Part shown: positions 1,404-4,400 of the stretch, piece by piece | Position numbering within the stretch: the first letter of the stretch is position 1 | Layout of the letters: each line of letters starts with the position of its first letter | Assembly (NCBI RefSeq): GCF_048593235.1 | Contig: NC_133620.1 | Location: forward strand, 352,460,454 to 352,524,453 | Origin: Sminthopsis crassicaudata | Taxonomy: Eukaryota | Direction of reading: 5' to 3' | DNA length: 64,000 nt | The notes under the pieces: generated by a model | The model's input: only the letters and a program-made list of their open reading frames with translations | Databases searched by the model: none | Told to the model about the DNA's origin: nothing | Position numbers and translations under genes: made by a program

Positions 1404-4400
1404 CTGGGGAGACAAAATTATGGAAATGTAAATATAAGAATCATTTCCTCACCAACAAGTATAATGTGGACAGTAATACAATCAAAAAAATATACATTAT
1501 CACATATACATATTCTCTATTTGTCATATAAAAATCAAGGCATAGCACTGATAATCTGGATTTAATTCTCTAATGAATTGACTGTTAACCCTGTATAGTG
1601 GGGGTTTGACATATGCTTAGTTACCTAAGATGGCATCACTCCCTTGGAAGATACCATTTTATGCTATCTAGGTATGCATCAAACTCCCAACATAACTTTC
1701 AATTCAGAGAACTGGTATTAAAGTTGAGAAGATCTGACTTTAATTCCTACCTCTAACATATGTTGAGTGAGTGATTCTGGACAAGTCACTTAACTTCTCA
1801 ATGTTCAAAGCAACTTTCCAATACTAAAAATGCATTTCTTCCTCTACATGAGAAATGATAGGACCTATAATCATAGTTGGAACCTTAGAAGCTATTGAGT
1901 CCGAGCTGCTCTTGTTACAAATGAGGAAAGGACCAAGGACACAGAAAGTTTAAGTTATTGACCCATGATCACACAGCTAATGAGTGTCTCTAAAGTAGCG
2001 TTTGGACCCAAGTCTTATTGATTTCAAGTTACTGAACTTATCCAGGGTCTTGGAAGCTTATAAGGAGACCTCTCACTGATAAAGACAGCCAAAATTGTTA
2101 TTTTCTGTGGAAGGTATTTTTTTTACTACAATGAATGATAAGGACATTTCTAAAAAATTAAATCGGGGAAGGAGAGCAAATAATGTGGACATTTTCTTCC
2201 CAACAACATACTCTGAAAGGCCATGCAGACAGATTAACATTTTCAAACTTTGGTAACAAATTTCTTGCTCTTTGGGTCCCTTTGCTTTAGATTTTGGTCA
2301 TAATTTGGAATCACATATGTTGCTTTGTCCAAAATCCACAGGATGACTTACTTGCAATCCTCACTCTCCAGCAAGCCACGGTACGTGGAAATCTCACACT
2401 CTAACCGTGCTCTGACATCCAGAAGGACCTGGTACTCTTGGTTCTGCCTCTCTAGGTCACCACGGATCTCAGCCAGCTGGTGTTCCACATTGGTTATCAT
2501 GCACTGTACCTGGGACAGCTGGGAGCTGTAACGAGCTTCAGTTTCTGTCAGGGTGTTCTCTAGGAATTTCTCTGTGATGAAGGACAGAAAAGAATATCAG
2601 GTCATTTATTCAAGGCTTTGTAAGACACTTCCAAAAATGTCTCCCTAAGTTTCATAGTCACCTTATAAAGATGATAAATAAGAAAAAAATCAGATGTCTC
2701 CCTGTGAACATTACTTGTTTTTCTATCTTTATCTATCCAGTGCTTCTCTATTCTCCTTAAGAAAAAATACAAGCCCCTTCTGTTTGGCATTTAATACCCT
2801 TTATACATAGCTTTCACTCACTTCTTCAGTCTCATTATCTGATATTTACCCACCATCTGATCCAGCCAACCTGGTTTTTTTGCTGTCTCAATACATGATA
2901 CCCTATCTTATTTCCCCCCTTTGCCGAGAATACAATCACTCCTCACCTGCATCTCTTAAAATCCTTATCAATCTTTAGCCAAGCCTTTTATCTATAACCA
3001 AGATTCTTAATTTTGTGGGGGTGGGGGGGTGTATGTGTGTGTGTGTGTGTGTGTGTGTGTGTGTGTGTGTGTGTGTGTGTGTGTGTGTTGTGAAATCTAT
3101 GGACCTTTTTCCAGAATCATGTCTTTAAGTAATTGAAGGAAATGATAAATTTCAGTTAGATGTGAGTGAAAATTAAAATATTTTTCTTCAGTTAAATTCA
3201 AAGACCCTTGAAATCTATTCCCAGGCTTAGTTCTTTGTTCTATAAGAAGTCTTTCCTGATCCCCTCCAATTGCTAGCATCTTCCNNNNNNNNNNNNNNNN
3301 NNNNNNNNNNNNNNNNNNNNNNNNNNNNNNNNNNNNNNNNNNNNNNNNNNNNNNNNNNNNNNNNNNNNNNNNNNNNNNNNNNNNNNNNNNNNNNNNNNNN
3401 NNNNNNNNNNNNNNNNNTAAGCAACTTGAGAGAAAGAACTCTTTGATTCTTTGTCTTTTGTTTTTATCCCCAGCACCTAACAGAATGCCTGGTGAATTGT
3501 AGGTACAGAAAAAATGCTTGTGGACTCATTGATTGTTTGATTGATTGTTTCATCTGGAGTCACAAGGTGAACTCAAAGCCAAGGGGCAACCCACCAGGTT
3601 GTGCTGAGCTTGCAATTCAATCTCCAGAGCATTGACAGTGCGTCTCAACTCAATGATCTCTGCCTGGCAACTCTGCAGCTGTTCTGAGCTGGACAGCACC
3701 TGCTTGTTCAATTCCTCTGTCTGAAAAAGAAATCGGTTTTGGTCAGGAAGTTTGTTGAGGCAGCTGGTGAAGATGGACTGACAAATTCTGCCTGACATTC
3801 TGGTGAATTAGAGGAAGTGTACTACATCCTCACCTGAGTGGTGAACCATTCCTCCACATCTCTGCGGTTGTTCTCCACCACAGTCTCATACTGACACCGA
3901 GTCTCATTCAGCACCCTGTTCAGGTCCACAGTTGGAGCAGCGTCTACCTCCACATTGAGTCTCTCCCCAATCTGGCATCGTAGGGTGTTGACTTCCTACG
4001 GAAGAAAAAAGGGAGGAACCCAGCAGAAATGAGGCTGCTCATAAAGTCTCTTATAAGAGCATTATTATTAAACACATCAAGTTTTTTTTTTTTCCCCTTG
4101 AAGCAGTAATTAAGCTTTTCAGCTCTCTGGGAACATAAAGCTTGAAGAAAATAGTAATAGTATTTGCTTAGTCATTTTTTTCATACAATAATTCACACTA
4201 TAACCCTACAAGATGAATACTATTATTGTCCCCATTTTATAAATGGGAAGATAGGTTAAGAATGGGAGAGAGATGGGCTAAATCATTTGCCCAAGGTTAC
4301 ACACTTAGTAAATAGCAAAAGCAGGATTTTAACTTGCCCTTTTCTGACTTCAACAGTCCATCCATTATGTCACCATCTCCATGACTCACGAGAAAGATAG

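Follow-up and report, generated by a model that had tools for sequence, protein, structure and literature searches.

The premature stop in an assembled dunnart type I hair keratin gene is not shared by the species and probably reflects the loss of one base in assembly

A type I hair keratin gene in the genome assembly of the dunnart Sminthopsis crassicaudata is interrupted in its sixth exon by a premature stop codon, which a single missing base brings about. Such a stop may mean that the species has recently lost the gene, that the sequenced animal carried a null allele, that splicing circumvents the lesion, or that the base was dropped in the assembly. We examined these readings in the window containing the gene, a stretch of 64,000 nucleotides, together with the same site in public sequencing runs from further conspecific samples and a related species. 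The species as a whole does not have the gap, which is most likely an assembly error of a single base, or at most a rare null allele.

A minus-strand gene of seven exons (gene 1) takes up the first 10 kb of the window; its exons are as follows:

9237..9584, minus strand: exon 1, initiating ATG at 9584; the Cys-rich head and the first part of the rod
7018..7100, minus strand: exon 2, 83 nt, open
6075..6231, minus strand: exon 3, 157 nt, open
3834..3995, minus strand: exon 4, 162 nt, open
3595..3720, minus strand: exon 5, 126 nt, open; its translation closes with ...LQAQHNL, phase 0
2352..2571, minus strand: exon 6, 220 nt; end of coil 2 with the helix-termination motif; Pfam Filament 243-312, E 2.7e-24
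1265..1403, minus strand: exon 7, coding portion; tail rich in Cys, with the stop TAA at 1267-1265

All introns of the gene are of the GT-AG type and exons 1-5 and 7 have open frames in the phase expected of them, as the earlier note on this DNA had it when it described the remaining exons as intact. Besides the gap in exon 6, no second lesion was found in any exon or splice site of gene 1. An AATAAA lies near 947, beyond the exon 7 stop. Pfam searches were made with the exons one at a time and not with a joined spliced model. Of the 313 positions of the Filament profile PF00038, exon 1 accounts for 1-61, exon 3 for 91-142, exon 4 for 143-197, exon 5 for 198-238 and the part of exon 6 past the break for 243-312, and gene 1 thus follows the profile from its start to its end, as is required of the rod of an intermediate filament protein. 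Helix-initiation and helix-termination motifs are both present at the rod ends, the latter aligning to EIATYRRLLE of keratin 14, and the closest solved relatives of the exon 6 peptide are the coil 2B segments of keratin 14 and keratin 10. Cysteine makes up 10 of the 54 residues of the head and 9 of the 45 residues of the tail, and both are poor in glycine, a composition by which gene 1 is predicted to be a 'hard' (hair-type) type I keratin.

Gene 1 belongs to a tandem array of four genes on the same strand, the other three having their exon 1 at about 21143, 35056 and 57362. The three paralogs correspond to it exon by exon, with internal exons of 83, 157, 162, 126 and 221 nt, the last of these being 220 nt in gene 1. 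In its rod, its seven exons and its Cys-rich ends, gene 1 is like the type I hair (cuticular) keratins of the KRT31/KRT33/KRT34 group, from which the one-base gap is its sole notable departure. The likeness is presumably to human K31, K33 and K34 in particular, at the level of the group rather than of one orthologous human gene.

The lesion lies close to the start of exon 6. Read on the minus strand, intron 5 ends with ...tcatcacag at 2572, exon 6 starts at 2571, and its opening in the window is AGA AAT TCC TAG, with two features of concern:

2560..2562, minus strand: premature TAG, codon 296 of a 411-codon frame, caused by the missing base
2563..2564, minus strand: CC run (GG on the plus strand), the site of the gap; CCC (GGG) in two conspecific samples and a related species

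This opening and its stop had been described before, as had an exon 6 of 220 nt against 221 in three paralogs; reading of the minus strand confirms the first and alignment the second. The paralogous copies of the exon (32588-32368, 18644-18424 and 47794-47574) are each 221 nt long, and the four-way alignment has a single gap, at the third base of a Ser codon (TC- versus TCT). On the plus strand, 2560-2566 reads CTAGGAA. The stop was also said to lie more than 50 nt upstream of the last junction, and indeed its distance to the exon 6/7 junction is 208 nt. By the established 50-55 nt rule, nonsense-mediated decay is therefore expected for a transcript that bears the stop. The open reading frame that covers exon 6 in the window, at 2500-2348, begins at a Met downstream of the gap, and it is thus the same in both alleles.

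Whether other samples share the gap was read from public runs, which were searched for positions 900-2900 of the window; four of the runs found (X5, X7, X11 and X12) were aligned as contigs at 90% likeness. Runs X1-X4 derive from one sample, possibly the source of the assembly, whereas X5 and X6 belong to one study and X7-X10 to another, all of the same species. X11 and X12 represent two related species, each holding about an eighth of the sampled words. The comparison at the site rests on X5, X7 and X12, X11 being without a contig over it.

In each of these three runs, an extra G behind 2562 (plus strand) is found in the full depth: 61.3 of 61.3 in X5, which is a different conspecific sample from a different study, 6.79 of 6.79 in X7, a third conspecific sample, and 34.8 of 34.8 in X12, a related species. 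One contig of X5 (record 16) contains all 2001 bases of 900-2900 with 10 substitutions, the extra G being its only gap against the window; record 27 of X7 spans 1935-2892, and record 9 of X12 is the orthologous contig, its alignment continuing through the introns. No alternative contig with the gap at this site was found in either of the two other conspecific samples, X5 and X7. The insertion turns the plus strand into CTAGGGAA and the coding strand into TTCCCTAG. With the third C, exon 6 reads AGA AAT TCC CTA GAG (RNSLE...), is 221 nt long and is open, which agrees with the intact form, TCC CTA GAG, that the earlier note had deduced from its paralogs. The same note had set beforehand that CCC (GGG on plus) would count against a biological reading, and this is what the contigs of X5, X7 and X12 contain. 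The gap as such is present in this assembly, as claimed, but its extension from the assembly to the species fails, other samples carrying the base.

Paralog contigs were considered as the origin of the extra G and rejected, since their pieces cover only 2409-2551 and end short of the site. Record 31 of X7 and record 23 of X5, for example, end at 2551, a loose end there matching the acceptor region of gene 3, and the rows with the extra G at 2562 derive from contigs that align through introns. X7 had been guessed to be RNA; its depth is low and even over the introns and there are no splice joints, and it was therefore counted as DNA.

In the possible source sample, X1-X4, the shares of sampled words over 900-2900 of the window range from 0.98 to 0.89. 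Two of these runs hold 0.98 of the words, which means that about 4-5 of 213 are absent, roughly the loss that one differing site would cause. This would fit source reads that depart from the assembly at a single site, but the figure does not point to any particular place in the 2 kb, coverage drop-outs could also account for it, and it has little weight as evidence. The divergence of conspecific contigs from the window is about 0.5% (10 of 2001 sites). At position 2639, in intron 5 and 77 bp from the gap, the window has a G and X5, X7 and X12 all have an A; the G is a private derived base, or else a second error.

The coding sequence around and beyond the gap bears the marks of constraint. In the frame-shifted part of exon 6, 29 of 210 nt differ from gene 3, the closest paralog, and the differences between codons are silent in 25 cases and replacing in 2. 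Over all exons, gene 1 and gene 3 are separated by 85 silent and 18 replacing codon differences, and in the coding part of exon 7 four of the five listed differences from two relatives are silent. This excess of silent differences, together with the lack of a second lesion, argues that gene 1 has been maintained by selection, apparently up to the present. The likeness between the two genes is uneven along their length: in exon 1 (9237-9584 in gene 1, 34709-35056 in gene 3) only 4% of bases differ, as against 12-20% in exons 3, 4 and 6. To judge from this pattern, which suggests gene conversion, the 5' ends of these tandem paralogs may have been exchanged.

With these results at hand, the gap is probably a consensus error of the assembly. 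According to this reading, gene 1 would be an ordinary type I hair keratin, kept intact in the species by selection, and three C (GGG on the plus strand) would have been written as two at 2563/2564. The intact gene would encode a keratin of 411 residues, spliced at the normal CAG acceptor. As is expected of an assembly error, the gap is absent from independent conspecific samples (X5 and X7), and we infer that it is an error rather than an allele of the sequenced animal. A homopolymer error in a draft assembly was among the explanations that the earlier note had offered; it has now become the most likely of them, with a private null allele of the sequenced animal remaining beside it.

Assemblies made with Flye from PacBio CLR or ONT reads and polished with short reads are known to retain indel errors. 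One dunnart draft was produced in just this manner, PacBio CLR and ONT reads from two females having been assembled with Flye and then polished by Pilon with the short reads of a third animal (PMC11091235), although it may not be the assembly from which our window comes; a later, ONT-based dunnart assembly is near-T2T (PMC13408496). Residual one-base indels in long-read assemblies are described as a known cause of false frameshifts and premature stops (PMC12007338). The gap resembles such errors in that one base is lost from a short run, in a conserved and otherwise intact gene, and in that independent samples do not have it. It differs from them in its run of only 2-3 bases, which is not a classic long-homopolymer site and which speaks to some degree against an error. 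The private substitution at 2639 also points away from one, as the assembled haplotype then has private variants that look genuine, of which the deletion may be another.

It is possible, if somewhat doubtful, that the gap is a real loss-of-function allele, rare or private to the sequenced animal and perhaps heterozygous, which the assembler or polisher happened to pick. Transcripts of such an allele would presumably be degraded by nonsense-mediated decay, leaving the animal dependent on its second allele and the paralogs nearby. The gap is, after all, present in the assembly, on the same haplotype as the private base at 2639, and variation within the species is plentiful, at about 0.5% of sites; the lack of other defects, moreover, is as compatible with a very young allele as with an error. 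However, the gap is missing from the relative and from both other conspecific samples, in which no alternative contig was found, and 0.98 of the sampled words, not all of them, occur in the probable-source runs. In addition, a frameshift is a priori rare in a gene under such purifying selection.

A further reading accepts the frameshift as real and has splicing correct it. The end of intron 5 offers a second AG:

2570..2574, minus strand: CAGAG, in which the acceptor CAG (2574-2572) is followed by the AG (2571-2570) of the Arg codon AGA

If some transcripts used the AG at 2571-2570, the gene would be leaky and coil 2 one residue shorter. The arithmetic of this proposal works: as the earlier note had stated, a second AG 2 nt downstream restores the frame as KFLENTLTE, one residue short, and our translation from an exon start at 2569 is open through KFLENTLTE...EDC to the end of the exon. 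In terms of junctions, the normal acceptor would give ...AACCTG joined to AGAAATTCC and the second AG ...AACCTG joined to AAATTCC. We nevertheless consider a leaky gene of this kind very unlikely. It requires a real allele, yet the gap is absent from other samples, and because these have CCC no rescue by splicing is needed, contrary to what the earlier note had entertained. The second AG is a GAG, placed two bases past a good CAG with its pyrimidine tract. In the choice of 3' splice sites, GAG is the weakest acceptor and an upstream CAG wins.

The context of the second AG does not favour its use either. CAGAG is identical in two of the three paralogs, which are intact and in which the second AG would break the frame, and the motif is, as judged from these copies, best described as an ordinary acceptor followed by codon sequence and not as a dedicated second acceptor. 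In the intact allele of gene 1, too, use of the downstream AG would disrupt the frame. The rod length of intermediate filaments is strictly kept, and the rod profile wants three residues between the end of exon 5 (profile 239) and LEN (243), whereas the rescued product supplies two. NAGNAG tandem-acceptor splicing is alike in that two AG stand close together at one intron end, but the spacing here is 2 nt and not 3, and the second site is a GAG that breaks the frame in the normal allele. Tandem acceptors yield two products that are both in frame; with a spacing of 2 nt, each allele of gene 1 has one in-frame site. One may also speculate that a young and real null allele lets a small share of its transcripts escape decay through the GAG acceptor, at the price of a one-residue deletion in coil 2, a combination that we hold to be highly improbable.

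The least tenable reading, that of a recent pseudogene fixed in the species and a marsupial counterpart of human KRTHAP1, has the stop in the window as its only support and can be practically dismissed, since both of the other conspecific samples (X5 and X7, from two other studies) are intact at the site, no second lesion accompanies the stop and the signal of constraint is strong. Barring a mislabelling of species, the CCC in X5 and X7 rules out pseudogenisation at the level of the species, and the CCC of the related species agrees with it; the recent pseudogenisation that the earlier note had proposed is thus not borne out. The lesion of a species pseudogene is species-wide and comes with relaxed constraint or more lesions, and neither is seen here. 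Human KRTHAP1 is a type I hair keratin pseudogene by virtue of one premature stop, its great ape orthologue being functional (PMC2754481). It is similar to gene 1 as a type I hair keratin that looks intact except for a single premature stop. In KRTHAP1, however, the stop is species-wide in humans, whereas other dunnarts of the same species lack the stop seen here.

For annotation, the assembly error that we favour is a reason for caution, as any pipeline working on this assembly would label gene 1 a pseudogene or a low-quality protein, when the species has an intact and conserved hair keratin despite the assembled stop. Should the gap prove to be an allele after all, it would amount to a rare loss-of-function variant of an ordinary kind, with close paralogs nearby, of modest interest for the laboratory colony and of none for keratin biology.

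The run alignments and the window hold a few further observations. In X12, a contig with a depth of 37, which is genome-like, joins 1406 to 2346, bringing the exon 7 and exon 6 sides together with only 9 letters of intron 6 left and 24 letters on its shorter side; this joint could stem from a retrocopy or a shortened paralog in the related species, or from an artefact of alignment. Within intron 6, hundreds of contigs in all four runs cover 1771-1806, with a summed depth of about 900-1600 and many loose ends, and this segment is a high-copy dispersed repeat common to the three species. The window is also interrupted by five runs of N of unequal lengths (3285-3417, 7817-8080, 12674-13442, 46912-47058 and 55840-55978), at least three of which are flanked by purine-rich or other simple-repeat sequence.
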